Shown piece after piece: positions 1,572-30,537 of a stretch of DNA of 64,000 bases. The first letter of the stretch is position 1; each line of letters opens with the position of its first letter. The notes under the pieces were generated by a model. The model worked only from the letters and a program-made list of their open reading frames with translations, was not told the DNA's origin and ran no database searches. The translations under genes and the position numbers were made by a program. This DNA comes from Lepidodermella squamata (Eukaryota; Animalia; Gastrotricha): positions 248,001-312,000 of the forward strand of contig JBLDXI010000074.1 of assembly GCA_047495785.1 (NCBI GenBank). The letters are read 5' to 3'.

Positions 1572-3107
1572 ATGAAATTTCAGTCCACTTACATATGTCG
1601 CCCGTGCGGTGAGCATGCTAGCGTCGAAATCGACGGTTTCGAACTCACAGACCGTGTGATTACAGTCAAATCTTTGATCGAAGCGGAAATAGGAATTCCG
1701 AAAGAATTGATCCAGCTTTACTATGGTGATACCGAGCTACTCGATCCCAACCAGCGACTATGCGACATCAAAGGGAGCAAAATTAACGAGAACCCTTGCG
1801 CTAAACTCAGCTTTCTCGACATCGATAGGAGCAACATTAATGAGAAACCCGGACTCAGCTTTAGAACTCAAATCGCAATTCTTGCCATTTTGCCGAATTC
1901 CGACTTCAAACTCCCGGATTTCGACGTCGTTGCATCGATGACGATTGCCGATCTGAAGAAATCAATTGCAGGAAAAATGACTATCAAGCCACAGCATCAG
2001 CTGTGTCTCTTTCGCGGCGATGATTTTTTCGATCAATTGGACGACCATCGTACGGTTGGATTTTACAAAAGCAAAGAAAATTGCCTGAAAATTTCTGCGA
2101 ATATTTTTGATGCGGATTTTTTCGAAATTTCTATCCGCCTGCCGTCGAACAAATTACTTCCTATGTTGATTCACAAAACTGACCAAGTCGAGAATGTGAA
2201 GGAGCGCATTTTCGATCATGTTGGAATTAGAATTCCAGATGCTTTGACTCGGATCGATTTGGAGCTGAAAAAAGTATCTGCGACTTTGGAGAACAAAGAT
2301 TTCCTGGGCTATCACAATGTCGAACCCTACTGCGTGCTCACTGCTGCTATTAAAAAAGCTGAACCTTTTGAATTCAGCTTCAGACATCCTGATCTTCCGA
2401 AAGTCTTCAAAATCCGAGAGGTTCGAATTTCAGATAAAATTGGTGATCTTAAGAGCAAAATTGCTACAGCGACTTCGATGCCTATCACTTCGTATCGGTT
2501 GCATTTCGAATCATTGCATGGCAAATGGCTCAATGATGACAGCCTTACTTTGTTCGAATGTGGAATCCACGACCCTTCGACTCAAATCTACATCGCTGAT
2601 AATGATGCTTTGATCATTTCTAGCGGAGATTTCGGCGATTTCCTGATCAAACCAGCCGATTTCAGCCTCATAGTAGCTGGTTTGAAGTCGAAAATTGAGG
2701 AATTGAAAGGCGTTCCAAGCCGTAGTCAGCTGCTTTCTGTGGAAAAAGGACCGCTGGACGATTTCCCTGGATCTTTGGCCACTTACGGTCAAATCGGCCG
2801 GATGACAATTATTAAGCTAAAATTGAAGAAATCGGAAGAAAACATCGCTGTCAAGATTTCAGCCGGGGTTTGTCGAGCTATTGCAAAGATCAAAATCGAC
2901 ACTAATGCCCGTGAGCAAGGGATGAAAAACGTTTTGAAGAAGTATTTCCCGTTGGTTAACGATTTTGGACTGTACAATTTTGCAACAAATCGCCTGATTC
3001 TTTCGGTATTCGAGTCTCATGTCTGGAATAACACGCAGGTTACGTTGGGGCCGAAACCGCAGAACCCCAGCCCGATGGATAGGGGTGATTTCCAAAGTTT
3101 CTGGTGA
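1572..3107 (+). CDS. Tandem ubiquitin-like domain protein, copy 1 (about 6 UBL domains; terminal ubiquitin domain absent)
   Basis: 511-aa intronless ORF with repeated beta-grasp motifs (VKSLIEAEIGIP..IQLYY, IADLKKSI, VENVKERIF, IGDLKSKI, LKSKIEELKGVP..QLL). Colinear with 26273-27985 but stops at GDFQSFW. Splice acceptor tttgtag about 33 nt upstream of ATG. Confidence 0.8.
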   Translation: MKFQSTYICRPCGEHASVEIDGFELTDRVITVKSLIEAEIGIPKELIQLYYGDTELLDPNQRLCDIKGSKINENPCAKLSFLDIDRSNINEKPGLSFRTQIAILAILPNSDFKLPDFDVVASMTIADLKKSIAGKMTIKPQHQLCLFRGDDFFDQLDDHRTVGFYKSKENCLKISANIFDADFFEISIRLPSNKLLPMLIHKTDQVENVKERIFDHVGIRIPDALTRIDLELKKVSATLENKDFLGYHNVEPYCVLTAAIKKAEPFEFSFRHPDLPKVFKIREVRISDKIGDLKSKIATATSMPITSYRLHFESLHGKWLNDDSLTLFECGIHDPSTQIYIADNDALIISSGDFGDFLIKPADFSLIVAGLKSKIEELKGVPSRSQLLSVEKGPLDDFPGSLATYGQIGRMTIIKLKLKKSEENIAVKISAGVCRAIAKIKIDTNAREQGMKNVLKKYFPLVNDFGLYNFATNRLILSVFESHVWNNTQVTLGPKPQNPSPMDRGDFQSFW

Positions 3108-3480
3108 AATTAACTGGTTAATAATGTGATTTGATGCAATTATTTCTAATCAAGCTCCGGCATTTATATTTTTGTTTTCATGTTTTTAGTTTTTAGGAAT
3201 TATATTATATACTCGAATATTTGGAACGCTGTCTCAGTTGATGTATGAAGAATGTATTGTATGCTTCTGCCTGCGCCTTGAATTATTTTTTCGAGAACGT
3301 GGCCAAATGGGTTAACTTGGTTTGTCTTGAATTTCAACAGAAAGCTGAAGTCTAAAAGTTGACCAGCATGCAAATATTATTGACATCCGCGTTTCTTTTC
3401 CCGCAGTTGACTGAGTCTGGGTCAAAACGTGAAAGCTTCACCCTGAGGTTACCCTAAGGTCACCCTGAGGTGACACATGC

Positions 3481-3787
3481 GGACCTGGCCCGCTGGTATG
3501 CCTTAAAAGAAGGGTGAGTTGGATCTATAATCTCTTCCTCGACATACTATGAAAAATATGAAAGGTCCGTCTGGCCCAATCGGTTTCATCGGCGACCCAG
3601 GCCCCATTGGCCATCGCTGCATGTTCGGCGTGCGTGGTCCTGCTGGCCCGAAATGCGACTCTGGGAAGCTCGGCCTGAAAGGTGATCCTGGGTGACTTGT
3701 TTCCCTGGATCCCCAGGACGAGAGGGCGAGCCTGGTGTTCGTGGGATCGGCCTGGAGGGCGACGAGGGTGAATCCAGCTTGCGATGA
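3481..3787 (+). pseudogene. Decayed collagen Gly-X-Y exon
   Basis: From 3558: MKGPSGPIGFIGDPGPIGHRCMFGVRGPAGPKCDSGKLGLKGDPG*, then after a frameshift FPGSPGREGEPGVRGIGLEGDEGES. Stops, a frameshift and Cys at two Gly positions. Confidence 0.75.
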
Positions 3788-4019
3788 GGAATTTTGCTCT
3801 TAAACGTTGCACAAAGCGTTTCCGAATAACCAGATTGAAAATTTCAATTTTTTCAGTTTTAAGATGGATTTTCATTTTCTTGAAATCACTCTTCTTATGT
3901 GATTTTTCGCATTTTTAGAGGTATAAACCCACGTAAAACGAAGAGGGTAGCAGCTTCCTCCCGAGTACTACATAAAATAGAGCCCACGATTCTCGGATTC
4001 TCGGAAAAATCGCATAATA

Positions 4020-4194
4020 CAGTAGAAGAACGTTATAGTGAACGCTCTCCGTGCCATCAAATTCGTTCACTATGACGATTGTTCACTATAGCGATAGTTC
4101 AATACACGTGAAGCCACAAGCCACGTGCCATCGAGTTCGTTCACTAAGACGATTGTTCACTATAAGCGGTGTTTACTATAACGATCTTCTACTG
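4020..4194. mobile_element. Tc1/mariner-pogo type MITE
   Basis: TA|CAGTAGAAGAACGTTATAGTGAAC ... GTTTACTATAACGATCTTCTACTG|TA; internal GTTCACTA repeats. Confidence 0.85.
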
Positions 4195-4816
4195 TATTAT
4201 GTTGTGAAAAATCGCCTCGTCTTATTTTGTGAGTTTTTTCTCGAAACTGTCCTCTATATAAATTATTTTTTTATCAAACTTGTGACCCTACCAGGAAAAC
4301 CGTGAAAAATCGAGAAAAGTTCAATTTTAAAGATTATGTTCAAATAGGCAATTCGATATTGAAATGTATTGAAGTTTTTTTTCAAAATTTAGAAATTATC
4401 GCCCAGCTCAAATTTACGAGTTGATTTTGTAATAAAAATGGGGATATGAATCGGCATCCTTTTTCTGCTCTCGGCAAAAGGAATTTTTAGTTTTTGTCTT
4501 TAACCTTATCAGCCCACTATCGGAATATTTACGGGTCGCAAGAGCTACCGAACTTGGATTTCATCCAACAGAACTTGAAAATATCATCGAAAGAATTGTT
4601 TTACGTTGATGTGGGCACTTGGACGGAGGATCGGCGTGGAATGACCTTGATTGAAAATGTAGGAAAAACTTTTCCTTTGCTTTAGAAAATCGCGGAAAAT
4701 CAAGATACGTGGCTTTCCAGAATCATCGGGTTGACTCCTGCTTCATACTATTCATTACTTTTCGTACCCGAGTCAATATAGTCTGATTTTAGAATAGATT
4801 CTGATTTTGAGATTCT

Positions 4817-5000
4817 TAGTGGAACCAGTTAATAATCCACAAGTTCCTGATTGGTCGGGAAGTTGAAATCTGATTGGTTGGCTCAACAAGCACGCGACTC
4901 GCGCCATTTTCTTCACAATTACGCTTTTCAGGAGATGCTTTTCGAGCGTGTTCTAAAAATAGCAGCCAATCAAAAAAATTCGGATTAACTGGTTTCACTA
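4817..5000. mobile_element. MITE-like element, paralogous to 1180-1353
   Basis: TAGTGGAACCAGTTAAT ... ATTAACTGGTTTCACTA inverted ends; duplicated along with the poly-UBL upstream region. Confidence 0.6.
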
Positions 5001-5597
5001 AGTCAATCTAGTTGGCTCATCAAAATAAAATTACTTCCTCATCAAAGGGATTTCGAGTAAAATCTAACCTCTCCGGTTTTATTGCCTTTATCTTTTAGCT
5101 TATTAATTCTTGAAAAGTGGACAATCTCAGAAAAAATGTTCGGCAACCTCGAGAGCCCCTGAAATTCAGAAATTTCATTATTTGCTAAGACTAGAATGCT
5201 CGAAAATCTACCCGCAATCGCGAGCTTCAGCAAATTGTTAGTCCAGCTAATAGCGATATTGCATGGACTCGGTGGTTCCGCTAAGTTGCTTTTTCATTTT
5301 ATTCTACTGGAACCTTTGGAACACGGAAAAGCTTTTGGATCTTTGCAATGAATAATTCCGAAAATCACCGATTAATGATCGGGTCACATTAGATTAAATG
5401 AGTATCTGAGCAGCCGATCTGAGCAGCAAACGCCCACCGGGTTTTCATGACATATTTTTTCAAGTTTCATTGAAGCTTAGCCTGGAGGGAGAATGTGGAA
5501 TATTGTGCCTGGCCAATGGCCAAGGTTCCCTGCTTGTAACAAAAAATTATATCCAAGTTTTAAGGTTTTAAGAGTTGTTGAAGCTTAGCATCAAATA

Positions 5598-6295
5598 GAG
5601 GAGGGAGCCCTAATTTCGGCCACTTCCTAAATATATACTCTCATTCTACAGGAGGCAAGGGATTTTTTAGATGTTTTTCTAGAATTTTAGAAAGTCAACC
5701 GCAGTTAGGCCATTAGGTAGAAGACAAGTTATCAAACTTGTACCTGTCAAAACAAGTTCAAGCACATGAGTTTCAGGCATCACGTCGTCAAGGGAAAGCT
5801 CACAGGTGAAGTGACAAAGGCGGTTTTTATAGTCAGCCTATTGAGACAAATCTAACTACAGTGAAATCTCCATAATTTAGACACCTTTCGTTGAGGCCTA
5901 AAACTGTCTAGTTATGGAGCTGTCTAAGATACAGAGAGTCCGAACAATAGTTGTCTTTGTGGTTCGTCGCCGATAAAAAGTGTCTAATTGTGGAAGTGTC
6001 TAATTTATAGACATCTAATTTATGGAGATTTCACTGTATACCAAATTTGCGGCATTAGTGTATCTGGATGAGGTGGCCGAAATTAGGGCACCCCGCTCCC
6101 TAATTCCGGCCGGGTGTCTGGGTGACTAAAGAATTAGCCATAAATCAAGGTAAAATCGTCCGGACTTGCGGAAAGCGGCATTCGATAGCCTAATATCTCC
6201 TCTTTAACTCTGCTTTTGCCGAATATTTTCAAAAATTCACCAGGCTGGCAAAGTAGGAAAAACCTGAAAAGCGGCCGAAATTAGGGGGGGTGCTC
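5598..6295. mobile_element. Non-autonomous DNA transposon containing a nested MITE
   Basis: CCCTAATTTCGGCC / GGCCGAAATTAGGG motifs at both ends and internally; termini TA|GAG...CTC|TA; lies in the extra 1.4 kb absent from the copy 1 upstream region. Confidence 0.5.
5859..6036. mobile_element. pogo/Tigger-like MITE
   Basis: TA|CAGTGAAATCTCCATAA ... TTATGGAGATTTCACTG|TA. Confidence 0.85.
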
Positions 6296-6670
6296 TAAAT
6301 CAAGTGCGGAAAATCAAGCGTTGATGAATCATAATTTCAAGCTGATTCTTGGACACGCGTTTCAGATAGTTTTTGAACGAGAACGCTTAGTAGAATTTTA
6401 CGAAGGTCGTGTTGCCGTTTGATGTTACGAGAACTAAAGATTGTCTAGACTTTTTTATTTTGTTTGCTGTGTGCGTCCACAATTCACTACTAAGTATTGT
6501 TCTGAGGCTTCGATTCTAATAATTATCAATTCATAATTTATTGGAATGAAGAACCTGAATCGATAAAATTCTGAGCTATATAAGCGGTTTTTACAATACC
6601 TAATGATTTGAATAATTTTTTTGTTTTTATTTGTAGGGTTTATTTCATTAACTTTATTCGTTGGATGCCC

Positions 6671-8384
6671 ATGAAATTTCAGTCCACTTACATCTGTAGC
6701 CCCTGCGGTGAGCATGCTAGCGTTGAAATCAACGGCTTCGAGCTGACAGATCGAGTGATAACAATCAAGTCGTTGATCGAAGCGGAAACGAAGATTCCGA
6801 AAGATTTGATCCAGCTTTACTATGGTGATACTGAGCTACTCGTCCCGAACCAGCGACTAAGCGACATCCAGATGAGAAATGCCGAGGAAGAAAATGTATG
6901 CGCTGGACTCAGTTTTGATACTCAAATCGCGATTCTTGCCATTTTTCCGAATTCCGACTTCAAATTCCCGGATTTCAACGTTGCTGCATCAATGACGATT
7001 GCCGATCTGAAGAAATTGATTAAAGCAAAAGTGAGCGTCAAGCCTCACATCACCTGTGTCTCTTTCGAGGCGATGATTTTTTCGACCAATTGGACGACCA
7101 TCGTACGCTTGGATTTTACAAAAGCAAAGAAAATTGCCTAAAAATTTCTGCAAAAATTTTCGATGCTGATTTTTTCGAAAGTTCTATCCGCATGCCGTCG
7201 GGCAAATTACTTCCTATGTTGGTCCACAAAACTGACTAAGTCGAGAACGTAAAAGAACGGATCTTCAATCATGGCGGAATTCGAATTCAAGATTCTTTGA
7301 CTCGGATCGATTTGGAGCTGAAAAAAGTATCTGCGACTTTGGAGAACAAAGACTTCCTGGGTTACCACAATGTCGAGCCCTATTGCGTGCTCACTGCTGC
7401 TATTGGAAAAGCTGAACCTTTCGAATTCAGCTTCAAGCACCCGGATCTTCCGAAAGTCTTCAAAATCCGAGAGGTTCGAATCTCGGATAAAATTGGCGAT
7501 TTGAAGAAGAAAATCGCAACTGCAACTTCGATGCCTATCACCTCGTATCGATTGCATTTCGAATCTTTGAATGGCAAATGGCTCAATGATGACAGCCTTA
7601 CTTTGTTCGAATGTGGAATCCACGATCCTTCGACTCAAATTTACATCGCTGACAACAATGCTTTCATCATTTCAAGTGAAGATTTCGGCGATTTTCTGAT
7701 CAAACCAGCCGATTTCAGCCTCATAGTAGCTGGTTTGAAGTCGAAAATTGAGGAATTGAAAGGCGTTCCAAGCCGTAATCAGTTGCTCTCTGTGGAAAAA
7801 GGACCGATTGACACTTTCCCTGGATCTTTGGCCACTTTCGGTCAAATCGGCCGGATGTCGAAAATTAAAGCCGGATGTAAAGCTAAAATTGAAGAAATCG
7901 GCCGAAAAAATCGCTGTCAAGATTTCATCCGCAGTTGGTCGAACTATTGCGAAGGTCAAAATCGAAACTACTGCCTGTGATCGAGGGATAAAACCTGCTT
8001 TGAAGAAGTATTTCCCGCTGGTCAACGATTTCAGCATACAATTTCACGACTAATCGGGTGATTCTTTCGGTTTCTGAGTCTTATGTTTGGAATATAACGC
8101 ATGTGAGGTTGGGTCCGAAGCCCCAGAAACCCAGCCCGATTGATAAGGGTGACTACAAAATTTTCGTCAAGATGCTGTCAGGGAAAACGCTGTCTTTCTA
8201 CGTCAATTCTGGCGAGTTGATTCATTCGGTGAAGGAGAAAGTTCATGCTGTTGATGGCATCCCGCCCGATCAACAGCGGTTGGTGTTTCGTGGTCTACAG
8301 CTGGAATCTGGTGGGACGGTGGGTGGGTATGGTATTGCTAACGAGGGCAGTATTCATTTGGTTTTAAAACTGCGTGGCTGTTGA
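6671..8384 (+). pseudogene. Tandem ubiquitin-like domain protein, copy 2 (pseudogene)
   Basis: Colinear with copies 1 and 3. 1-nt deletion near 7050, CAA>TAA stop at 7237-7239, CCGGATGT duplication/frameshift near 7850-7880, 1-nt deletion near 8035. Terminal ubiquitin-like domain ends HLVLKLRGC*. Confidence 0.85.
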
Positions 8385-9563
8385 AATAATAAAACAACCC
8401 GTGAATTGATTTCAAACATATGATGTGTAGCTTTCACCTTGTTGTTCGTTAATAAAATCCAGTTTTTTCGAAATTGATTTATTTCCTAGCTACCGATTCC
8501 GAATCCAAATTTCAAAGCTGATTGTTGATTAATTTGCATCAGCTTATATTGAAGTAAAAAAAATTGAAATGCTGAAGGTTTTTCGATTGGATAATCTGCT
8601 TTTTTCCTCAATAATCATAATAAATCGGTGAATAGTTTTCAACTGATTGGAGCACTGATTGGAAATTCTCTGATTTATTTGTTCAAGGCGAGATGGTACA
8701 TTGAAGCCTTGTAATTGAGTTATTAGATGGCAATCCGGTTAAAAAGCAGAGAAATTTGTTGAGGTAAATTCCTGGGAGCAAAATAATTTTCAGCCCCAAC
8801 TGTTCACAGGTTAGCGATTGGCAAAGGGGTTTCAAAACAACTTTTGAAGTGATCTAGCTTCGGCTTCGATTGTACATGAGATTGTTGGCAAAGTTGATAC
8901 CGCTGAAAAGCCCAAGAGGCGAGCTATTTTTCAAAACAAATTTCCTCTTTTTATCCGTTGTGCACAAATAGACATTCACGGCCGAAGCTTTGAGTGTCCA
9001 AATTAGGGAATTCAGGCGGTCGAGTGTGGGCTAAAACGCTTTCAAACAGGGAAACTAGGCGATAATTTCATTGCTCGTACTTTTGACTGAAAAAATTAAG
9101 ATTTTCAATTTTATCAGGTAATTTTAATTGGGTCTTACTTTTACCGGAACTAAAATTGCCTGTTGCGGAACCAGAGTTTCCAAATTTTCTGAAATTTCAT
9201 GATTAATTTGAAAAAAATCCGAATTAATGACCATACATTTTTAGTACTAACACTCTTAGCCATATCACGGGTAAAGTGTAAAGAAAAATCACGCATCACG
9301 CAGGCGTGACGGCTAGAAACGGCATTGAGCCGTGGCTACTCGTTACTTGTCACGTATTTTGGCGACTAAAATTGTCTATTCTCAGCTATCCGTTGCAAGC
9401 CGTCATATTTCTTTACAATCGAACGGCTTGTCTACGCATCACGGGTAAAAGGAGCGTTACTTGCCGTTAGAAGCCGTCTCTATCCGTTGCTTGCTATTTT
9501 CCAAAATCACGGCTACAAAACGCGTTACTTGCCGTCACTCATAATTCATTATTCGTTACATAG

Positions 9564-9791
9564 CGTGAGCAAGCCATTAGAAGGCGTTACGGGCTAATAT
9601 TATCCATATAGGGTACCAATCCACCTTGAAACCTGGTGCCAAGACTGCTACCCGCTGACTTTGAGACATGACAGTCGAAACTTCCAAGTCTCAGAAGTAA
9701 CAGGTAGCAGCCCTGAAACCAGATTTCAAGGTGGATTGGTACCCTATATGGATAATATTAGCCCGTAACGCCTTCTAATGGCTTGCTCACG
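9564..9791. repeat. 228-bp palindrome with 68-bp perfect arms around a MITE core
   Basis: 9564-9631 is the exact reverse complement of 9724-9791; core TA|GGGTACCAATCC...GGATTGGTACCC|TA. Confidence 0.9.
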
Positions 9792-11528: not shown

Positions 11529-11624
11529 AAATATCTATTTAATTTCGGATGACTTGTCGCGGACGATTTGGCATTTCGCCGATAAATTATTCGCTATTAT
11601 TTATTATTTTTATATTTAATATTG

Positions 11625-14126: not shown

Positions 14127-14800
14127 TATTTGAGAAATTATCGACTGAGAGAGTCCCGACTCGAGCGAAAAATTTTCGCTGTGCTTATTTGGCTCGAATT
14201 TAATCTAGTTTCGCAATTTGAAATTAGATTTGAAATTTGAACTTTTTTCAGATCGTGTCAAATGGGTCTGACAGCGGAGCGACGCGGCTCTTCAAGCAGC
14301 TCAAGGCTAAGCTCCACAGCCATCACTGCGATGTCAATCATCAGCGGCGAGCGTTATCGGAAGAGTAGCAATGAATTTCTGTGCCAACAAAGTCCAACAA
14401 ACTTCAACAAAGCCTCAATCTATTTCTTCTGCTCCGCAATTTCAACGATTACCCATTTCGACGTCTGGTCGATTCCTATGAAGTCGAAGCAAAATCTAGT
14501 AACAACTACGTTTTGATGACTTGCCGTTTTCTCTTTTAAAACTTGTTTTTTTGATGAAATGTGATTCATTAGTGGTACGGATAAATTATACCAATAAATT
14601 CGATTGAAATGGATATGCAACGCGTCTGAAGAAAGAAAATCCGAGGCTTTTCATGATCCAAGGAAAAGGAATAAGTTAACGAGTTTATTGCATTCTTCAA
14701 TTTTTCATCAGTTTGAATAGGAAGTATAGCGCATTCAAGAGATTCAAGTACCATAGATATTCAAGAGGCACTTAATCAATAATAATGCAAAATCGAATGT

Positions 14801-15059
14801 TTAAACAAAGCCAAGGAAGCATTTTACAGCTTGGCGGCGGACGGCAAGCGTGGCATTCGCAGCAACGGGCAGGCCGTAAAATTGGCAAAGTTCATTAATC
14901 CGATGGCCGTTAGCGTTGCTAAGGCTGCTGAGGAGACGAGGCGCGGCGAATTCGAGACGATGAAGAGTTTGATTTGGCGGGTAGCGGATCGCAATCGCTT
15001 CCCCCGGGCCGGCCGTCTGCTGGTGGTCTCGGTTTTCTTTCTTCACATCCGAGAGAAGC
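14801..15059 (-). pseudogene. Orphan exon 2 of the Mug135-C-like gene (partial duplicate of 23287-23545)
   Basis: Open frame ...INELCQFYGLPVAANATLAVRRQAVKCFLGFV*. Homology to the second copy spans about 14670-15120; no exon 1 found upstream. Confidence 0.55.
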
Positions 15060-15691
15060 CTGGTAAAAGCAGGGAAAAACTCACATTATTTACTAAACTT
15101 TATAAGTACGTAAGATCTGATAATGTTGGGGCCCAAGTCAGAAACGTGCCCGAACGCGTTCGGGTATACCCGAGCCCGACTGGGTAATAGCGTTTTGCCT
15201 GTTCGCACTCTGGCTGTTTCAAATGCTGCCCGTATGCAGCGTTTACGTTAAATGGATGAAAATGAAGCAAATCCCGCATGAGTGGACACGGGTAAGAGCA
15301 GGTATCAGCCCGAGTACGGCTGAGAGAACAATAGAACGAACGGCGCATTGTTCTGCGCGCGGTCATACTTTTATACTTCTCCGGGCTTGGGCACCGTTGA
15401 TGCCCGAGTTCGACTATCGACTACAATAATAGCAGGGCGCGCCATGCTAATAAACATTTTTAAAGAAAAGGCAGCAATTTTAGTGAACCAAGGCAGCAAA
15501 GAAACAATCGCATTATTTTTATTTTCCAGTTGTTAAGTGTTAGATTCGGCTTTATTCGGCTGAATAATTCAATAGATAATAAGTTGATTAAAATAGATAG
15601 TGCATAAAGAAGGCAAAATTTGGTACTGTGATTCACGCGCTTATTGTTCGATATTTGTCCCACAGAAATTTGGTGAAAGTATTTTCAGCCA

Positions 15692-16726
15692 TCAAGTCCC
15701 AATAAGTTCTGCTTGCAATCTGGGCCGGAAGAGATTCAAAATAAACTCCGAGCAATTCGGGCAGCAGCGATTTCCTCGACGCATAATTTCACAAATGCAA
15801 GAGAAATGAAACGAATGGTTGCATGTTGCCTGTGCCCAATCTTCAACGCGAATATCGGTCTTACAAATTTCGCAAATGCCAACTGATGCGTGAGCTTCTT
15901 TCATAATGTAGTCGATGGCTTCAGCCGCTCTCTTCTTTGCGCCCATCAATGGAGCGCCGATCATCTGGAAATATCGAAGCAAGATGTACTCCATCAATTC
16001 AACGAAGCTTATCGGCGCGGGGCCAAACTTGGTTTCACATTTGTTGATGAAGTTGTTCAGCTCATTCAGACAATTTTTACGATAATGCTCATTCTTCTTC
16101 GCATATTTTCCTAATCCATTCTCGGTTAGGATCACCCGATTGCCAATTTTATCGAAAAACTGCTGCATTTCCGAATCATCTGCTCATAACGGGATTGAAA
16201 AATGAACAGAGGCTTTGAAAGCTTCAAGCATACCCTTTAGCCAGTTTTTCATAGATTCCTCCTGCGAATCGTCCATACCCTTTTTGTAATGCGTAGCGAC
16301 AACTATGCAGTTGGAGGCCCATCGAGAATCGAACATCTTCGAGATGAGAGCTAAATTCGCTCGTTCTTCACTTGAAACGCGGCCAAATTGCATCACGATG
16401 ATGATGCCATGCAATCCCAATTTCGCCCTTCTTATGAACTTGGTCAAGTTAAATTTCAGTTCAGTATTTGAAGAGCCGCTATCCCCGAAACCAACTGTAT
16501 CAGCAAAGAGCGTGTTCATCTTTGAATTGACAATCCAGCTTTGCTGTTTGGTCACTGAATTTACGGTGCAGTCGATTGGACATGGCGACTTGCATGCTTC
16601 CACACTGAAGTCCTGATTTTGCAGCATGTTAACTATTGTTGATTTACCTTTGCCCGTAGTTCCAACGACAATAATAATTCGCCGTACTGCAACATCAGCA
16701 TTGGTTTCGGGAATGGGATGAGACAT
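15692..16726 (-). CDS. AIG1/GIMAP-type GTPase fused to RING-H2 finger, gene A (326 aa; exons 16726-16234, 16179-15692)
   Basis: G1 GTTGKGKS, G2 SVT, G3 DTVG, GIMAP-like box GLHGIIIVMQFGRVSSEE, G4 THY. A 54-nt GT-AG intron joins in frame to CEIC...CNHSFHFSC...CPNC. Confidence 0.85.
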
Positions 16727-18072: not shown

Positions 18073-19133
18073 ATGGATGTGGTCCAAGATGTTCCAATCA
18101 AGAAAGTCATCTACACAATGGGGAGAACTGGGACCGGAAAGTCATTGATTGCTAATATGCTGTACAACAACGACTACTCAGTTATAGCATGCTCACAGCC
18201 TTGCGCAATCGGCAATACAGCAAACTCCGTTACCAAACAATGCCGATGGATCTTTGACCCAAAACGAGGCTACTTGTTCGCCGATACCGTTGGCCTTGGT
18301 GACCCTGTGAAGAAGCCCGAGGATGTTTCAAAGGAGCTGAAAAAAATGCTTCGAACAGCCGAGCTTGGCGTGCATTGTATCTTCTTTGTCGTCAAGTTCG
18401 GCAGGCTTACAGACGAGGAGATCAAAAATTTTGAAATCTTGCCGCTCATTTTTGACAGCACGTGGGCTGATCGTTGCGTGTTGGTGGTCACTCATTATGA
18501 AGGCGAATTGGCGGATATAGATGGCGTAGATTTAAAGCTAGCAAAGTGGGCTGGTGGAGAGAAACGTATGCTGTGGTTTCTCCAGAAAATCAAACGCCGA
18601 GTAATATTCACAGATAATTCAATCGATGGTGACTGCGAGGAGGAAAGCCGGTTTGTTATTTGTAGAAATGTTCGTTAAAATCTTGCATTGAAACTGATGT
18701 ACGCAGTCCGGATCGGCGCGACTGTCTCAATCAACTGAACGCATTCATAGATGATGCCGATTCGGTCACGCGCGCTGCAAGTCATGGCATTTTCGAGTAC
18801 GCGGCCCGTATCAAATACTTAATCGAGAACATATTAATAAAGTTTGGCGTGATGAATGAACGTCAACAACTTATTAATAAGATGCTACCGCAGCTGTTGA
18901 AGTCTGGCTGCAGCGTTGGCACGGCAGAAGACTGCGCAATTTGCCTCGAAGAGGTCGACGTGCGGAATATGTGTCGAACGTCATGCAACCACTTTTTCCA
19001 CTATGAGTGCCTGCGCAGGGTGGTCGATAACTGTGATGGTACCTGCCCCATATGCCGCTCGCCGGTGACAATCATCACTCGCCCTCTGTTACGCGATGAG
19101 CAGATGGTAGTAGATTCCAAGACTGCCGCTTGA
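18073..19133 (+). CDS. AIG1/GIMAP-type GTPase fused to RING-H2 finger, gene B (334 aa; exons 18073-18650, 18707-19133)
   Basis: G1 GRTGTGKS, SVT, DTVG, GVHCIFFVVKFGRLTDEE, THY, TDN. A 56-nt GT-AG intron joins in frame via RRDCLNQLNAFID (matches RKNCLNELNNFIN of gene A) to CAIC...CNHFFHYEC...CPIC. Confidence 0.87.
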
Positions 19134-21697: not shown

Positions 21698-23286
21698 CTT
21701 TATGTAAAGAAACAAATCCGACGCTTTTTCATATACCCAGACGGAAATTTAAGACCAAAATCTCGGCTTAATGTTTCGGCTGTTTATTTGATACCCCCAA
21801 ACTGTCCAAAAGTTTTACTCGAAAATTCGGCCAAATGGTCGAACGTTAAATTTGGGCCAATTTTTTCACCAAAAGTCTTTCTGAAATTGTCAAATTTCGG
21901 TGTAGTCGATGGGTGAAAATTTCGGCGAAACTGCTATCCGAGTTAATTGATGGGCCAAATCTATCATGCATTAGTTCCGATACTTATATGCTGGGGGTTT
22001 TACTCCATCGGCCGGCTTCATGTTGCTCAGTTCTTTTAGTCATCTCAGATCCCATCAGCTTCTCAATTACATCGTATTTTCAATTTTAATTTTATTATCA
22101 ATTTTTCATTTTAACATCACTATATAAATGCCTGCTTAGGTATGAACGCAGGTCATGTCGAACTTGGTACTTATTTTTTCCGAAGCGCCGAAAAGATACC
22201 GTCAATATTTCAATAGGCTTTGAGGTTTATATAGGAAAAATAACTTTCACTTTTGAGACCCAAAAAAATCAAATGAGAACTCTACTAGAGAAATTTGTCA
22301 TTCCGATCTCTGCTGTGACGTGTGTGACGCAACACAGCTTTGAGTTGCACAACAATCGCGCGGAATGAGGGCATTTCTCATTACGACTTTTTTCACTCTC
22401 ATTTTAGATTGATTTTATTGCGATTCTGAATTGGGTTCTTCGCAAGAATAAGCCTGACACTAAATTCAAGAGCAATTTCATCCGATCTTAAAATTGATAA
22501 AACGCGAAAATTTCCCGCTAGTGAGATTTTTTACTATTCCTTTCGGGGCTGAAATCAAACGAAAAGTGATGGTCATGCACCCATGAATCGAATCGAAATC
22601 ATTTAGTTTAACTTGGTTAATTTCATACCGTAGAAAAACAGATGAGCTATAAATTCTTCCTGCTGTGTCGCGAAAGTGAGGAAAGAAAGTCAATCCCTAA
22701 TCCCTCGAAAAGAAGTGTTTCACAGCCTTAATAAATATTGAAACTACTGCTGCCGGCTATATATGTAAGACAATATAATTCTTAATATTAAATTCCAATC
22801 CATGCCGAAACTGTCAGCGAACTGTGGAGAAATAGCTACGGTCGACAACTCGACAGTTAATTACAACGAAAATCAGTTCGCCTAAACTTACTCGCTCAAA
22901 TAATCGATAAATAGTTTTCAGCATAAGATTTCGTTAAGCTTTTTGTCCAACAGGTGAAAACTCAATTTTTGCTGAAAATCGTCAATGAAACCATGGTAGA
23001 AATTCTTAAAAGTGAAGTTGCCAAAAATTAACGCTAAATTTGAAGAATTTTATGGGGGAAATCTCACACCGAAAAATTTGGCCGAAGATTTGGTCCTAAC
23101 GCCCTCTTGGCCACACGAATTTCCGTCTGGGATATATAATCCATGGCGGAAGAAAGGTAAAATACCTTGAAAATGTTAACGAGTTTATTTCACATCTCAT
23201 TGTTTAATTTTCTTTTTAAATAAGAAGCGAGACGTAAATTAGATATTCAAGAGGCATTTAATCAATAATAATGTAAAATCGAATGT

Positions 23287-23986
23287 TTAAATAAAACCGA
23301 GGAAGCTTTTTACAGCTTGGCGGCGGACGGCGAGCGTGGCATTCGCGGCAACGGGCAGGCCATAAAATTGGCAGAGTTCATTAATCCGATAGCCGTTGGC
23401 GTTGTTAAGGCGGCTGAGGAGACGAGGCGCGGCGAATTCGAGACGATGAAGAGTTCGGTTTGGCGGGTAGCGGATCGCAATCGCTTCACCCGGGCGGGCC
23501 GTCTGTTGATGACGGTAGTTCGCCTTCTGCACATTCAAGAGAAGCCTGGTAACATCGGAGAACAAAATCACATTATTTACTAAACCTTAAAAGTACGTAA
23601 AATCTGACAAATTTTAAATTAAAAATTAAAAAAAAACGAAAAGACGCTACAAAAACTGTTCACGTTAATTTTTAAGTAAGAAAATTTAAAATCCAAAATC
23701 CGAAAAAAATAAAATTTGGTAAATTTATGATTGGTGTTTAATTTCGAATTTCAAGCTTTCGAATTTCAAAATTTCGAAAATGCTGAAGCCTGTGGCGATT
23801 TTCGGAGCCTAGTTTCCAACATCAATAATCTCACCTTTCGTACTCCATTTCGTTGGCCCGTTCTTGGCCCGCTCGAATCTCCTCCACTGTGGCCATAACG
23901 TTTCCTAAAGCCGCCAGCACCTGATCTTGGTTGGCGGCGGGCGCTCCGGCGTTGCCAGCGAAAACGACTGCCTGCCGTGCGGCCAT
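23287..23986 (-). CDS. Small two-exon protein with Mug135-like C-terminal motif (136 aa; exons 23986-23835, 23545-23287)
   Basis: Exon 1 MAARQAVVFAGNAGAPAANQDQVLAALGNVMATVEEIRAGQERANEMEYE splices (GT-AG, phase 2) in frame to RLLLNVQKANYR...INELCQFYGLPVAANATLAVRRQAVKSFLGFI*. Confidence 0.7.
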
Positions 23987-24281
23987 GTAATTTCGTTGAT
24001 GACAGGCGTTGATGAGTCACGGCGAGGGGATGCCGGCTGCAGTTCAAATAAAAGCAATGAAGAATTATGTTGAAATTATGAGTGCGAATCAAGCGTGTTG
24101 ATTGATGCGAATGAATGCTGAGTGAATGATTGCGTACCTGCAGCAAATTGCTGCATTGTCTGAGTCACTGACGCGAGCCAATCAGCTTTCGACAAATTTC
24201 ATCTAGAAAATTATTAAGGCGCATTTTTTATTTACTTATTTATCATTCCTTTTTGAATAATATTGTGTGTGCGTGCATTAC

Positions 24282-24684
24282 GGTTGTACGACTTTTCTTT
24301 TCAGCAGTGACTTTTCCTCGGTGACAAATGAGCAATGACATTTGAGCTGCGACATTTGCGCAGTGACAATTCATCCAGTGACAAGTCAGCAGAGATTTTT
24401 GTTAATTTATATATTTTTCCAAATTTATTATTTTTATCTCGTTGACATTTGTGCAGTGACATTTCAGCAGAGACATTTCATCAGTAGAACTTCAGCCTTG
24501 TTCAGCAGGTGGAATATTCGCTGCATTAAAGTTGAGTTCAAAAAGTGCAAGTTCAATGCCCGAGATTTATAAATGAAAATTGCCGAATTGTCACTTGCTT
24601 ATTTTTCACTGATGAAAATTGAAAATTCACCGCTCAATAGTCACTGGTAATCTGTCGCTGCTGAAATGTCACTGCTCACTTGTC
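24282..24684. mobile_element. Foldback-like element made of about 14-15 nt CAGTGACATTT units
   Basis: Tandem GCAGTGACA units on the left and inverted TGTCACTG units on the right. Confidence 0.5.
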
Positions 24685-25347
24685 TTCAAATGATTATTTA
24701 AATTAATACTAAAAGTTTATTATTATCAATTTTTTCTTGCAAAGTGTCACATTTTAAGAGGTGTTTTGGCGTATTTTTGTACAAAATGCCTAATCTCCTC
24801 CTTTCGCTCGTATAAATTTGTTCAAATTTCGCTAACTTTCACAAATGCATCATGGAATTTTTCAGTTCTTTGCGCTTGCTACTTACAAACTAATAGAAAA
24901 TCAATTCCAACTTCAATCGGCGCAAGGCTAGTAGTTTGCCCGTTTTTCTTGAAAGGCTTTACCAGCGCTTTTTCGAAGCGGATGGTATAGGATCTTAGAT
25001 CCAGCCTCCTCCATCCCTTCTCGTGGGCTCTTGCTGAACGCGATTGAAATAAACCTGATAAAGAAAGGAACTTGTGCCAAAACTATAAAATTCAATTAAT
25101 GAGACATTCATTTTTTCCGCAAATGGACTACTTTATTTCTCGTTCGACACGTGACTCATCCAGCAGCTGGGTTGGGCGATTGCATAACAATGGGGACTGA
25201 TATAAGACATAAGAAGCATCAAAGCTTGCTTTTCTCGCTCTTCAGCTATTACATGGTGACAGTCTGCAGCTTTATTTCCTAGTGATAATTTACTACAAAA
25301 TTCTCCCAAGGTATTTCTCCCAACCAAAACCAATCAACCTATTATTA

Positions 25348-25527
25348 CAGGGTGGCCAAAAAATTCCGCAGAGCGGGAATTCGCTGCGCATCAATTTAAT
25401 GAGGAGTTTTGAGAAGATTGAGAATTTTAAGCATTCTTTTGCCAATGGAACTCCTCAATTTCTTGAATCTCCTCATTAAAATGATGCGCAGCGAATTCCC
25501 GCTCTGCGGAATATTTTGGCTACCCTG
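25348..25527. mobile_element. Tc1/mariner-type hairpin MITE
   Basis: TA|CAGGGTGGCCAAAA...TTTTGGCTACCCTG|TA with near-perfect arms. Confidence 0.9.
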
Positions 25528-25573
25528 TACAAGTATTTCTGGCCTCAAATTTCAATTTCAAACCTGAATTGTC

Positions 25574-25790
25574 GGTTCTATATGTCAATTGAGCAAACGA
25601 AAATTGAGCAACGAAAATGGAGCAAGGGCTTTTGAGCAACGATATTAGAGCAAAACGACACGAGAGCAAATTTTATTTACAATGAATAACAGCTGCAATT
25701 AATTATTAAATTTGCTCTCGTGTCGTTTTGCTCTAATTTCGTCGCTCAAAAGCCCTTGCTCCATTTTCGTTTGCTCAATTGACATAGAAC
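25574..25790. mobile_element. Mutator-like MITE
   Basis: Long TIRs with GAGCAA(C)GA units; 9-bp TSD TGAATTGTC. Confidence 0.85.
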
Positions 25791-26272
25791 TGAATTGTCA
25801 GCAATCATTTTTATATGTATATTTTATTGTATGAAAATTTTCAGAATTTTCGTTGACATTATTTTGACTCACAAAATTAAAACGGAATATTCGCAATCAA
25901 TTAACGATATACCTGTGCTATTTAGGTTTTAGATTCTTTCACCATTATTTCACAAGATCAAACTTGTTCATCATTTCGTTGCTCATTTTCGTTACAGGCA
26001 TGACTGGTAAATTGAAGGCTTCGCATTCACTCACCAAGTAATTACGATCAAAGGTCCGAATTGCGTCCAAATTGCGGCCGAATTTAAGAATTGACTGAGA
26101 TTTTTAGGGATTTTCTCTGCTCTATCAAATGATTATTGAAGTCGGGGAGGGAACAACGTCGATATAAAATCTTTCTATTAGCTTCACTATTAATTTTTGC
26201 TCTTCATACATCTTCGTCTTCGTAGATAAGTATTTGTAAATTTTGATCAGATTCATCAACCAAAATAAGTGC

Positions 26273-27985
26273 ATGAAATTTTTATGCAATTACATCAGCA
26301 GCCCCTGTGGCGGGTTTGCTAGCGTTGAAATAAATGGATTCGAGCTCACGGACCGAGTGATTACTGTCAAATCTTTGATCGAAGCAGAAACGGAGATTCC
26401 AAAAGATCTGATTCAGCTCTACTACGGCAATAGAGAACTACTCGATCTTAACCAGCAACTGAACGACATTCAAGAAATCAAAAAGAGCAAAACTAAAGAA
26501 AAAGATCTATGCGCTGGACTCAGGTTTAGAACCCAAGTCGCAATTCTTGCTATTTTGCCGAATTTCGATTTCAAATTCGCGGATTTCAACGCCAAGGCAT
26601 CGATTTCGATCGGCGAATTGAGGAATGTGATTGCAGGATTTGTGAAAATGAAACCAGGCAATCAGCTGTGTCTCTTTCGAGGCGACGATTTTTTCGATCA
26701 GTTGGACGAAAATCGTACGGTTGGATTTTACAAAAATGGAAACAATTCCCTGAAAATTTCGGCGAAAATTTTCGATGCCGAATTTTTCGAGATTTCCATT
26801 CGTTTGCCGTCTAAAAATTTGCTGCCTTTGCTTGTCCAAAAAACCGATTACGTGGGAAATGTTAAAGAACGGATCTTCGATCAGGTCGGAATTCGGCTGC
26901 CGGATGCTTTGCGCAAGATCAATTTGGAGCTGAAAAATGGGTCTGTTACTATGAATAACATGGACTTCTTACTACAGCACAGTATCGAGCCCTATTGCGT
27001 GGTTACTGCTGCTATTGGAAAAGCTGAACCTTTTGAATTCAGCTTCAAGCACCCGGATCTTCCGAAAGTCTTCAAAATCCGAGAGGTTCGAATTTCGGAT
27101 CAAATTGGCGATTTGAAAAAGAAAATTGCAACAGCGACGTCGATGCCTATCACCTCGTATCGGTTGCATTTGGAATCTTCGAATGGCAAGTGGCTCAATG
27201 ATGACAGTCTAACATTGTTCGAATGTGGAATCCACGACCCTTCGACTCAAATTCACATCGCTGACAACAACGCATTCATCATTTCCAGCGAGTATTTCGG
27301 CGATTTTTTGATCAAGCCAGCCGATCTGAACCTTAAAATTGCTGGTTTGAAGTCGAAAATTACGGAATTGAAAGGCGTTCCAAGTCGTGATCAGCTGCTT
27401 TTCGTGAAGAAAGATTCGATTGATAGTTTCCCTGGAACCTTGGCTAAATTCGGTCAAGTCGGTCGGATGTCGGTTATAAGGATGAATTTGAAGAAATCAG
27501 CCAGTAATGTCGCTGTTAAGATTTCAGCCGGAGTTGGTCGAACTATTGCGAAGGTCAAAATCGACGCTGGTGCAACTGCGCAAGGCATTAAATTTGGATT
27601 ATCAAAACATTTCCCCTCGGTCAACGATTTCAGCTTATACAATTTCGCAACAAATCAGCTGATTTTTTCCGCTACCGAGTCTTATGTTTTGAATAACACG
27701 CAGGTCCGGCTTGGGCCAATGCCTCAGAAGCCTAGCCCGATGAATAAGGGTGATTACCAAATTTCTATTCGGACTCTGACTGGGAAATTGTTTTCTTTTT
27801 ACGTCAATTCCGGCGAGTTGGTTTATTCGGTGAAGGAGAAAGTTCAATCGATCGAGGGCATCCCGCCTGATTCACAGCGGCTGATTTTTGGTGGCCGCCA
27901 AATGGATGTTGGTGGTACAGTTAACGAGTATGGAATCACGAACGGAAGTTGCGTGCATTTGATTCTGAAATTGCGTGGCTGCTGA
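26273..27985 (+). CDS. Tandem ubiquitin-like domain protein, copy 3 (intact, 570 aa, about 7 UBL domains, C-terminal LKLRGC)
   Basis: Intronless ORF whose ATG is equivalent to the paralogs' MKF start. The last 76 aa align gap-free with ubiquitin (TLTGK, EGIPPD.QRLIF, HL.L.LRG). No internal LRGG. Confidence 0.88.
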   Translation: MKFLCNYISSPCGGFASVEINGFELTDRVITVKSLIEAETEIPKDLIQLYYGNRELLDLNQQLNDIQEIKKSKTKEKDLCAGLRFRTQVAILAILPNFDFKFADFNAKASISIGELRNVIAGFVKMKPGNQLCLFRGDDFFDQLDENRTVGFYKNGNNSLKISAKIFDAEFFEISIRLPSKNLLPLLVQKTDYVGNVKERIFDQVGIRLPDALRKINLELKNGSVTMNNMDFLLQHSIEPYCVVTAAIGKAEPFEFSFKHPDLPKVFKIREVRISDQIGDLKKKIATATSMPITSYRLHLESSNGKWLNDDSLTLFECGIHDPSTQIHIADNNAFIISSEYFGDFLIKPADLNLKIAGLKSKITELKGVPSRDQLLFVKKDSIDSFPGTLAKFGQVGRMSVIRMNLKKSASNVAVKISAGVGRTIAKVKIDAGATAQGIKFGLSKHFPSVNDFSLYNFATNQLIFSATESYVLNNTQVRLGPMPQKPSPMNKGDYQISIRTLTGKLFSFYVNSGELVYSVKEKVQSIEGIPPDSQRLIFGGRQMDVGGTVNEYGITNGSCVHLILKLRGC

Positions 27986-28530
27986 AAAAACCCTTCTTCT
28001 ATGTAACTTGTAACTGATTGCTTACATAAAATCTTTGTACAAGGAATATTTCTATTGTGTAATAAATGTTTAGTAGGTGTTCATTTCGCCTCAAAATCGG
28101 AATTAAAATTGAACTCAGGAATTTTTTGTTGAAGGTTGAAGGTAGTCTGAAGTATACCAGAAAAATACTCACAGAGCCAATTTAGTTTTGGACACTCAAT
28201 GACATACTCAAGAACCGCCATTTAACGGAAAATTGACACCAAATATGACGTTACTCATCTGAGTCGCATCACCATAGTAGTCGCATCGTTTCATTCTTCA
28301 GAACTGAACCTGAAAACGAATTTTACCCAAGTTGAAAAAGAAAGCAGAAAACGTCTCCTCCGAAGTTACAGTTTCCTCTGAAATTTATTTCACGCTCACC
28401 GAATAAGAAAGCAAACCAGTTGAGTCTAAAATTCGCTTTTGGGTAGCAACCTGATTATCTTTGTCATTTAGTCATATTATGTCTAATTAGGCTATTTGGT
28501 AATTGAGGTAAGATGGCACGTTGCTAATAA

Positions 28531-28647
28531 CTCGCTAGCGGCGCAGCATAAAGTTCGATTATGCGGTGATTTTCATTTCCTTGGGTTTCACGCACTGGAA
28601 AAAGTTATACCGATATACTTCACGTTATATGCTGCGTCGCTAACGAG
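28531..28647. mobile_element. Small MITE-like inverted repeat
   Basis: CTCGCTAGCGGCGCAGCATA ... TATGCTGCGTCGCTAACGAG. Confidence 0.55.
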
Positions 28648-28686
28648 CTAGGACTGAAAAGCAGGGGTAATCTGAACTAACAATCC

Positions 28687-30537
28687 CTAGTCAACATATA
28701 GTTCCAATGTCACACGTTTAAAAAGACTCGACGGAAGTCGTAAACTGTCCCGAAGGTCCTCGGAATCGCGATAATGGCCGATAAAGCGACGAACAACGAT
28801 TGCGCTGAGCTGTTCCAAGCGTAACGGTTGCTTCTGCCTATCGGCAACACACTTCGCCAATGTTTTATCCGAGGGCAATATGTCGACGAGGCATTTCAGA
28901 ATTTGATTACAGTTACCAGCTGCCACCAAAACTGCCAGTACATCTACAATGATCAAGAAATGAATGATCACAATTTTCAATAACAGTTAATGACCTTACT
29001 TTCGCTTAAATGCCCGTCGGGGCAAAGCTCACTGATCGAATCGGCGGTTAGATGGGTAAGTCCCGAGAAACGCTTCTCGTCATTTTCCGAGGATATCACA
29101 CGTGGTCGAGGGAGGTCACAGCCTGTCATTTGCAATAAGCTGACCAAAGCGTAAATTCGACCCCTCAGACTCGCGCAAGTCACTGCAAGTGAAATCTCCT
29201 CCAAAAAACGATTCGTATTGAACTTGCTGCTGCACCTCTTAACCAGTTCACTGGTCAATGATGAAGATCCAACAGAGGCTCCCAGCATAAGGGCAGAGTA
29301 ACCGTCACTTGTGCTTTGAAATGCAAATTTTTCGTCAAATTCACCGTTCTCTTCGAGCTTGTCCAGTAATCGAATGAAGTTTTCCAAATCATTGCCCGTT
29401 GCAGCGATGTGATACGGCGTAACGTTGCCTTGAATGATTTTGGAACCGCAGCACGACTGCATTAGTTCACAGGGGGCGGTCAGGCAGCAGCCTATATTGA
29501 TCGCAGAAAAAATGAGCCGTAAGCTTTGAAATCAGTAAAGACTACCTTTTTCAATTAAATACTCGACAATTTCGTTTCGTTCGAGTGCGAATGCGAAATG
29601 AATAGGACGATAGTTGCAACCAGTCAGCGCCAGTTCCACATCAGCACCGCTCCTCATCAACTGAAATGCAATATCGGAGTGATCTTTTTCTATCGCCATC
29701 AAGAGAGGCGTATAGCCCTGTTGATTCTGCGCGTCAATATCTGCTCCTTTTGAAAGCAAAAGGTCAACAGTCTTCGCGTAACCTGCAAGCGTGTATGAAT
29801 TTGAGTTTCAGCTAAGCAGAATGTAGTCAAAGTTACCTTCCTGAACAGCCATATGTAAGGGTGTAACACAATTTGCATCGGCAAGGTTCACAGTCTTGCA
29901 TGGTCTATCAGCTTTGATTAGGGCTTTCACGACGTCCTCGTGACCGTAGCAAGCTGCTAGAAACAGAGGGGTACGTTGTTGCAAGGTCAGAGCGTCGATC
30001 GGGGCGCCAGCCTTAATCAAGACTTCTACCGTCTCCAAATGACCATTGACAGCCGCCCAGTGTAAAGCACTCACCTGACAAAAAGGAGTTTAATTATGTT
30101 ATTGATGTTATGACTTTTTCGAACGTCCTCACCTTCGTTCGGTAAATAGCGCGTGAAGGGTTAGCTCCGTGGTCAATAAGCATTTGGACCATTTCCTCGT
30201 GACCTTGTCTCGCCGCTAACACCAACGCCGTGTAACCATCAGGACAGTGGACATCGACGTAGATCTTTGTTTTATCGAGTAGGTATTTCCCAATTTCGAC
30301 GTAACCACGCTGGCCGCACAGGCGGAACGCGCCGGCGATTTGTTGCATGTCCAGGGCCGCAGGTGGAGCGAGGATTCGTTCTACAACATCGAGACGGTTG
30401 CGGTTGACCGCTTCGTACAAGCTCCATTTTGCTGGATCTTCAGAAGGCTTCTGAATGCCGTAGTTCTTTGATGTGCCAGTGTGATCCGGTGAAAATACCG
30501 GGAAAGTCGGGTCGTAAAAAGGGCGGAAATCCCCCAT
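28687..30537 (-). CDS. Ankyrin repeat and SOCS box (ASB-like) protein; exons 30537-30133, 30074-29837, 29782-29546, 29491-29000, 28943-28687
   Basis: Ankyrin motifs (TALVLAARQGH, SALHWAAVNGH, TPLFLAACYGH, TPLHMAVQEG, TPLLMAIEKDH) and a C-terminal SOCS box PLRLEQLSAIVVRRFI...LRLPSSL; in-phase GT-AG introns. Confidence 0.85.

Follow-up and report, generated by a model that had tools for sequence, protein, structure and literature searches.

We analysed a 64-kb window of the Lepidodermella squamata genome (64,000 nucleotides, positions 248,001 to 312,000 of contig JBLDXI010000074.1; coordinates below refer to this window). Between 1.5 and 30.5 kb the window contains six gene loci. These are three paralogues encoding a chain of ubiquitin-like (UBL) domains, which we call poly-UBL, two genes joining an AIG1/GIMAP GTPase to a RING-H2 finger, and one ankyrin gene. 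We interpret the region, with moderate confidence, as a neighbourhood of lineage-restricted and locally duplicated ubiquitin-system genes. Poly-UBL would act non-covalently and the GTPase-RING proteins would be nucleotide-switched ligases. All six loci were found where a first-pass annotation of the same DNA had placed them. Scans of open reading frames (ORFs) and Pfam searches across 1.5–30.5 kb identified no further convincing coding ORF between them. No Rfam match was present in the window. Introns in this part of the animal's genome are very short (54–60 nt, GT-AG).

The three poly-UBL genes, all of which lack introns, are listed below.

1572–3107, forward strand: poly-UBL copy 1, an open 511-amino acid (aa) ORF encoding units 1–6 without the terminal ubiquitin unit; a single tblastn match to copy 3 residues 1–496 (69% identity)
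6671–8384, forward strand: poly-UBL copy 2, a pseudogene with three frameshifts and one nonsense codon; tblastn pieces in three frames
26273–27985, forward strand: poly-UBL copy 3, an intact 570-aa ORF ending LKLRGC

Copy 2 has lost 1 bp near 7048 and 2 bp near 8034, has gained 13 bp near 7860 and contains a TAA codon near 7237. Its last unit is still open, as a 108-aa ORF that ends LKLRGC and matches the Pfam ubiquitin profile with 65.7 bits (8058–8384). The protein encoded by copy 3 divides into seven units of about 80 residues.

26273–26536, forward strand: unit D1
26537–26788, forward strand: unit D2
26789–27037, forward strand: unit D3
27038–27283, forward strand: unit D4
27284–27517, forward strand: unit D5
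27518–27757, forward strand: unit D6
27758–27982 (27758–27985 with the stop codon), forward strand: unit D7, the terminal ubiquitin-type unit, in register with ubiquitin residues 2–75 and ending Gly75-Cys76-stop

No unit of copy 3 matched another unit in BLAST comparisons. The Pfam ubiquitin profile (PF00240; curated cut-off 25.4 bits) matched the whole copy 3 protein with 127.8 bits. When units were scored singly, values were 72.6 bits for D7, 29.5 for D4, 22.7 for D1 and 13.7 for D3; D7 is hence a clear member of PF00240. We also used a broad ubiquitin-like profile, built from 1,167 repeats in proteins returned by the exhaustive search described below. Scores were 20.1 bits for D1, 3.6 for D2 (24.2 for the D2 of copy 1), 18.2 for D3, 28.6 for D4, 12.8 for D5 and 83.8 for D7, and the best of 300 shuffled sequences scored 2.4. 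Probabilities from hhalign comparison with the UBL profile were 92–97% for D1 to D5, 99.6% for D7 and 0.4% for D6. These matches support the presence of six ubiquitin folds in copy 3. For D6 (residues 416–495), neither hmmsearch nor hhalign gave a significant match to the 1,132-row UBL profile. By eye, D6 has a beta-grasp-like strand-strand-helix-strand-strand-strand spacing. Its language-model features lean to ubiquitin families (0.92), which is a lead only. A seventh ubiquitin fold is plausible. The first-pass annotation had described six to seven UBL repeats per paralogue; this stands for units 1–5 and 7 but not for unit 6.

The terminal unit is close to ubiquitin itself. D7 and ubiquitin residues 2–75 align without gaps, and 36 of 74 residues (49%) are identical. 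Residues L8, I44, H68, R42, L71, L73, R74 and G75 are retained, as are lysines 11, 27 and 29. Substitutions include K6R, K33I, K48R, K63N, V70I, R72K and G76C. The cysteine directly precedes the stop codon and sits at position 76. Hence, D7 is a unit of ubiquitin length with a G76C change, rather than a precursor with an extra residue after Gly-Gly. An engineered ubiquitin variant resembling G76C was among the best solved matches to D7. The C-terminal Gly-Gly of conjugatable modifiers was found in none of the paralogues; copies 2 and 3 end LKLRGC and copy 1 has no such unit. Similarly, copy 3 lacks the near-identical, RGG-ending units of a polyubiquitin precursor. In its translation, GG pairs occur only inside D1 and D7, and no unit junction carries RGG. 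Hence, the chain is predicted not to be cleavable into monomers as polyubiquitin is.

Duplication has left the three genes in different states. The upstream sequences of copies 1 and 2 match over about 170 bp and, further upstream, over a block at 1172–1362 that corresponds to 4811–5009. Homology of copy 1 to the other copies stops at 3095–3101 (8165 in copy 2), which is the border between D6 and D7. The copy 1 ORF continues for three codons past this point and then stops. The end of homology coincides exactly with the edge of the duplicated block; hence, copy 1 was probably truncated from birth. Most simply, a tandem duplication with an edge at the D6/D7 border would have created copy 1 without D7. 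The sequence that replaces its lost 3' end includes a short ORF with collagen-like Gly-X-Y triplets (3531–3692, forward strand).

We next consider selection on the copies. Pairwise synonymous divergence (dS) was 0.41 between copies 1 and 2, 0.64 between copies 2 and 3 and 0.80 between copies 1 and 3. The ratio of non-synonymous to synonymous rates (omega) was 0.26–0.40. Among units, omega was lowest for D4 (0.07–0.14) and highest for D2 and D6 (0.5–0.7); it was below 1 in every 80-codon block of units 1–6. Using copy 3 as the outgroup, and counting single changes only, we assign 31 synonymous changes and 15 non-synonymous ones to the branch of copy 1. Copy 2 has 25 and 16, respectively. The counts for copy 1 indicate that units 1–6 have been kept for their own sake, without a ubiquitin tail. 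We conclude from these codon comparisons that copy 1 is under purifying selection. The first-pass annotation had inferred birth-and-death evolution from intact, truncated and pseudogene copies. Our data agree; there are intact, tail-less and broken copies separated by dS of 0.4–0.8, with omega of about 0.16–0.3 (0.26–0.40 in the pairwise estimates). It had also proposed dN/dS scans, and these revealed purifying selection between copies but no coarse signal of positive selection in units 1–6.

Two observations suggest a non-covalent role for poly-UBL. Gly-Gly is missing in ubiquitin's register and copy 1, which has no tail, is under selection. Poly-UBL would then consist of seven small domains, six or more of which have a ubiquitin fold, in a chain that cannot be cleaved. 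Such a protein could serve as a scaffold, or could itself imitate a linear ubiquitin chain, and so engage proteins which bind or handle ubiquitin. It may form a rigid or beaded chain that presents a near-ubiquitin at its end, rather than a tag attached through its C-terminus.

Contigs from one sequencing run were aligned to the window. These cover genes and spacers alike and are hence DNA-like. No contig from a run of a related species aligned at 80% likeness. Summed contig depth over copy 3 was about 450, compared with 35–130 alongside, with up to seven contigs on D4. Contigs from copies 1 and 2 would account for this, perhaps with one or two further paralogues elsewhere. Between 26300 and 29900 many contigs differ from the window by 2–8% and, at places such as 27172, all aligned contigs differ. 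The run therefore contains another haplotype or strain besides paralogues.

Relatives of poly-UBL were sought in several collections. A word-index protein search with copy 3 returned nothing. When 1.84 billion representative proteins were searched exhaustively with HMMER and a profile of D1–D6, 177 matches were obtained at E ≤ 1e-3 (best score 101 bits) but none at E ≤ 1e-30. The top matches are long, diverged, non-cleavable arrays of ubiquitin-family units, found as singletons in environmental assemblies. They have up to 16 units and zero or one RGG. Lower-ranked matches are ordinary polyubiquitins. The RGC end was absent from all of the top environmental arrays. No poly-UBL was found in a scan of Joint Genome Institute (JGI) metagenomes, and scans of viral contigs, a search of limited sensitivity, found neither poly-UBL nor the GTPase. 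Thus, the poly-UBL family is without a detectable orthologue in these sequence collections, and the lineage is poorly sampled. For comparison, the nearest protein to the PIG-T encoded in the window is 60% identical and lies on a 6.9-kb metagenome scaffold; the next, from a nemertean, is 32% identical.

The genes beside environmental arrays are not consistent. HEPN_DZIP3 genes occur at one locus, kinases at one and nothing related at two. The first of these is a TARA scaffold of about 22 kb from another eukaryote. It carries three poly-UBL genes (two of 621 aa and one of 317 aa) that alternate, as a repeated unit, with two genes encoding HEPN_DZIP3 domains; here, a poly-UBL array belongs to a conflict-type cluster. 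On a 135-kb ENA contig, protein-kinase and ubiquitin-domain genes alternate beside a 663-aa poly-UBL gene, and a reverse-transcriptase ORF lies nearby.

The second unusual architecture is that of the GTPase-RING genes, referred to here as A and B.

15692–16726, reverse strand: GTPase-RING gene A, encoding an AIG1/GIMAP GTPase, a helical linker and a RING-H2 finger; 326 aa when spliced
18073–19133, forward strand: GTPase-RING gene B, with the same arrangement; 334 aa when spliced

The two genes are head to head, divergently transcribed and 1.35 kb apart. Their products are about 35–36% identical over the whole length. Pfam AIG1 matched A with 59.9 bits and B with 48 bits (cut-off 27). For the finger, A matched zf-C3HC4 (26.1 bits; cut-off 21) and B matched zf-RING_2 (38.6 bits; cut-off 27.3). 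Both have the C3H2C3 pattern C-x2-C...C-x-H-x2-H-x2-C...C-x2-C. In pattern and profile, therefore, A and B agree with RING-H2 ligases, and we regard both as putative ligases. The G domains contain a P-loop, SVTK, DTVG and a TH-Y-E/K G4 motif, and are followed by a partly hydrophobic helical linker. The only solved structures matched by the G domain of gene B were GIMAP7 (E 1.9e-8) and GIMAP4, and Atlas features place the domain with AIG1 clusters (0.95). A word-index protein search with exon 1 of gene B found nothing.

Each gene is interrupted by one small intron. That of gene A (16180–16233) is 54 nt long, has GT...AG borders, contains a stop and is flanked by ORFs in one frame. That of gene B (18651–18706; 56 nt, GT-AG) lies 20 codons further on. 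Both introns fall between the G domain and the RING half, at different positions, and each contains an in-frame stop. Hence, intron retention would give a GTPase-only protein from either gene.

To look for the fusion elsewhere, JGI metagenome contigs were scanned with the aligned G domains of A and B. One 1,339-bp contig, L004, too short to reveal flanking genes, has an uninterrupted 309-aa ORF (37–966, forward strand) that matches AIG1 with 40 bits and zf-RING_2 with 31 bits. This ORF aligns with A and B from end to end, across both predicted splice junctions, at 31–33% identity. The uninterrupted homologue validates the predicted splicing of A and B and indicates that the fusion is an older family. 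Judged from these alignments, the AIG1-RING fusion is real, is present outside this genome, and predates or lies near the split between A and B. Contig L004 lacks both introns and may be a transcript. The AIG1/GIMAP and RING-H2 assignments of the first-pass annotation are thus borne out, by two domains above Pfam cut-offs and by a full-length environmental homologue. A survey of snail AIG proteins lists 19 architectures, and five more by alternative splicing, that include death, kinase, ARM and Hint domains (PMC7053062). The text of that survey mentions neither RING, zinc finger nor ubiquitin (PMC7053062). Our literature search found nothing on an AIG1 plus RING architecture. By analogy with GIMAP2 and GIMAP7, GTP-dependent pairing of the G domains could unite the RING fingers of A or B and so switch on E3 activity.

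The sixth locus lies downstream of poly-UBL copy 3.

28690–30537, reverse strand: ankyrin-repeat gene, ASB-like, with five exons and four GT-AG introns of about 55–60 nt

Pfam Ank or Ank_2 matched three exons, with scores of up to 71 bits. By eye, the C-terminal 45 residues resemble a SOCS box, in which LRLPxxL comes after a BC box (L-x3-S-x3-V); the motif at the extreme C-terminus reads RLEQLSAIVVRRFIG...LRLPSSLF. A SOCS box was not matched by Pfam, even at E 10, or by any PDB sequence. Indels of a variant haplotype in the sequencing run fall at or beside the predicted introns. The gene is a probable ASB, and its product is probably a cullin-5 substrate receptor. Hence, the ankyrin half of the ankyrin-SOCS gene described in the first-pass annotation is secured by Pfam, while the SOCS half depends on a motif read by eye.

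Ubiquitin-related genes are not confined to the six loci. Three tandem, intronless genes encoding F-box and FBA domains (FBXO2/6-type) lie at 50276–51166, 52587–53480 and 53692–54567 on the forward strand; the DNA of the first two is 85% identical. Hence, the ubiquitin-related enrichment extends beyond 1572–30537. Across the 64 kb, ubiquitin-related genes are interleaved with iRhom, CNOT1, PP2C, BtpA and PIG-T. The BtpA-family gene (56529–56978, forward strand) lies between PP2C and PIG-T. Its family was called via the Pfam annotation of a syntenic gene on an ENA metagenome scaffold of a related organism (6,931 bp), which is the scaffold that carries the 60% identical PIG-T. On this scaffold the order F-box/FBA, PP2C, BtpA, PIG-T and next gene is kept as at 53.7–63 kb of the window.

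Repeats occupy two further kinds of segment.

25291–25881, no strand assigned: very high-copy repeat; summed contig depth 6,000–33,000 compared with 35–130 on either side; many joints and loose ends
14754–15120, no strand assigned: dispersed 370-bp repeat; second copy at 23240–23607, 89% identical by self-blastn; ORFs inside have no Pfam match

The high-copy repeat lies directly upstream of the intact copy 3 and shows many rearranged joints. No transposase or reverse-transcriptase ORF was found in a Pfam scan of ORFs across 1.5–30.5 kb. The description of this region as rich in transposable elements is therefore true of one very high-copy repeat and one dispersed repeat, but not of element-encoded enzymes.

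The first-pass annotation saw the locus as one co-regulated defence module, in which GIMAP-RING proteins are both pathogen sensors and E3 ligases, served by the adjacent poly-UBL as a dedicated tag or adaptor. We consider this unlikely. Three ubiquitin-related families are tightly adjacent, with few other genes among them, and GIMAP/AIG1 GTPases are immunity-associated and expanded in invertebrates (PMC7053062, PMC8857920). The TARA scaffold, where poly-UBL alternates with HEPN_DZIP3, also illustrates that such arrays can sit in conflict-type clusters. However, neither a RING nor a GTPase gene lies beside poly-UBL at two other environmental loci. The promoters of copy 1, copy 3, the A/B spacer and the ankyrin gene had no 8–10-mers in common beyond those of shuffled sequences, although this is a weak test. 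The poly-UBL duplications carried no GTPase-RING gene along, and the split between A and B is far older than those duplications. No locus of a relative with both families was found by the exhaustive protein search or the JGI metagenome and viral-contig scans. There is no coarse signal of positive selection in units 1–6, and the window has no E1 or E2 gene, as the first-pass annotation had stated. The idea of a tag is weakened by the Gly-Cys tail and by the lack of a ubiquitin unit in copy 1; poly-UBL may still be an adaptor. Overall, the gene content of the first-pass annotation holds, so that its account is partly supported, but the one sign that the genes form a functional system is their adjacency.

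Could poly-UBL instead be a true covalent modifier, activated through its terminal cysteine, or after removal of it, by a dedicated E1 and E2 encoded elsewhere? D7 keeps the L8-I44-H68 patch, R42, L71, L73, R74 and G75, and LKLRGC is conserved between copies 2 and 3 at a unit dS of about 0.9. Conversely, known E1 enzymes adenylate a C-terminal glycine. Removal of the cysteine would leave a single glycine, one residue short of ubiquitin's register. Since copy 1 has been selected without a tail, and no enzyme is linked to the locus, we think this very unlikely. There is a similarly slim chance that the poly-UBL genes are leftovers of mobile elements or viruses, or decaying duplicates with no host function. 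They are intronless, have no orthologue among the 1.84 billion representative proteins and find their best matches in environmental singletons; moreover, one copy is a pseudogene and one is truncated. Yet purifying selection is evident on the branches of copies 1 and 2 and between all pairs. The copies have flanks in common and stem from local tandem duplication rather than insertion; the viral collection, in a search of limited sensitivity, contained no relative. Other lineage-specific genes here, namely the F-box/FBA genes, are likewise intronless.

Several points weigh against the reading that we favour, of a neighbourhood of locally duplicated genes with a non-covalent poly-UBL. The cysteine codon is TGT in copy 2 and TGC in copy 3. 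That Cys76 has been kept in both copies despite this synonymous difference hints that the tail matters. D6 has no profile support as a ubiquitin fold. AlphaFold models, from alignments of 4–5 rows, had pLDDT values of 30 for the whole of copy 3 and 37 for the D6–D7 piece, and are unusable. Counting tandem families once, five independent ubiquitin-related families occur among about 11 independent loci in 64 kb. A rough binomial estimate puts such enrichment at about 1e-4 to 3e-3 per window; this assumes that 5–10% of genes are ubiquitin-related, and is not negligible over the approximately 2,000 windows scanned in the genome. An enrichment above the genome-wide share makes chance adjacency uncomfortable, and a common cause, either shared function or regional clustering, is likely. 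Regional clustering of fast-evolving families is sufficient to explain the adjacency; shared function is also possible. We infer both the mechanism and any cooperation between the genes. A bolder proposal is that the G76C-ending poly-UBL is a dedicated partner of the neighbouring GIMAP-RING proteins, and that together they form a lineage-specific pathway of defence which makes use of the terminal cysteine. This residue could make an unconventional linkage. Alternatively, it could be a trap that cannot be transferred and that catches the catalytic cysteines of host or pathogen enzymes acting on ubiquitin. We regard this as a long shot.

What is new here is the combination of well-known domains in two arrangements that we have not found described. 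One is a seven-unit, non-cleavable UBL chain, the last unit of which is near-ubiquitin with cysteine in place of Gly76. A natural ubiquitin G76C could act as a binder or as a trap, or be inert. The second arrangement joins a GIMAP-type GTPase to a RING-H2 finger and is conserved in at least one organism besides this one. What GIMAPs do is poorly understood, and a direct E3 finger gives the GTPase switch a testable output. A defence module would be important if true, and the case for it is adjacency. Hence, the interest lies in the two architectures rather than in the cluster.

Several known systems are comparable with poly-UBL. The environmental arrays (P0001–P0013 and others) are likewise long strings of diverged ubiquitin-family units and are the best matches to units 1–6. 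However, they differ in unit number and tail, and are similar in kind to copy 3 rather than orthologous. Polyubiquitins of the UBB/UBC type are also tandem ubiquitin-fold units, and appear as distant matches in the exhaustive search, but BLAST detects no similarity among the poly-UBL units, and their junctions lack RGG. ISG15 and FAT10 share head-to-tail, non-cleaved UBLs with the most ubiquitin-like features at the C-terminus. In contrast to poly-UBL, they have two units, not seven, and end LRLRGG or CYCIGG, not LKLRGC; no E1 or E2 is linked to the poly-UBL locus. Hub1, the SUMO-like domains of Rad60 and the UBLs of Rad23 and Dsk2 act by binding, not attachment. Poly-UBL resembles Hub1/UBL5, the SUMO-like domains of Rad60/Esc2/NIP45 and the UBLs of Rad23/Dsk2/ubiquilin in having no Gly-Gly end, and may share this mode of binding. 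These proteins have one or two UBLs, usually with other domains. None of them is known to be a seven-unit chain that ends in a near-ubiquitin, and our literature search returned nothing on seven-unit UBL chains.

For A and B, GIMAP7 and GIMAP4 are the best solved relatives. The G1 motif (GxxxxGKS), SVTK, DTxG and a G4 of the TH(Y)E/TRKE type all align. The difference is that vertebrate GIMAPs end in helices or membrane anchors, not in a RING. An analogy with RNF213-type pathogen tagging, drawn by the first-pass annotation, does not extend to domain content. RNF213 has dynein-like AAA modules and an RZ finger, whereas A and B yielded no domains other than AIG1 and RING. RNF112 (neurolastin) has an N-terminal RING and a G domain of the GBP/dynamin type; in A and B, an AIG1 domain is followed by a C-terminal RING-H2. 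Like RNF112 and RNF213, A and B would combine an E3 RING with a switch driven by nucleotide in a single chain.

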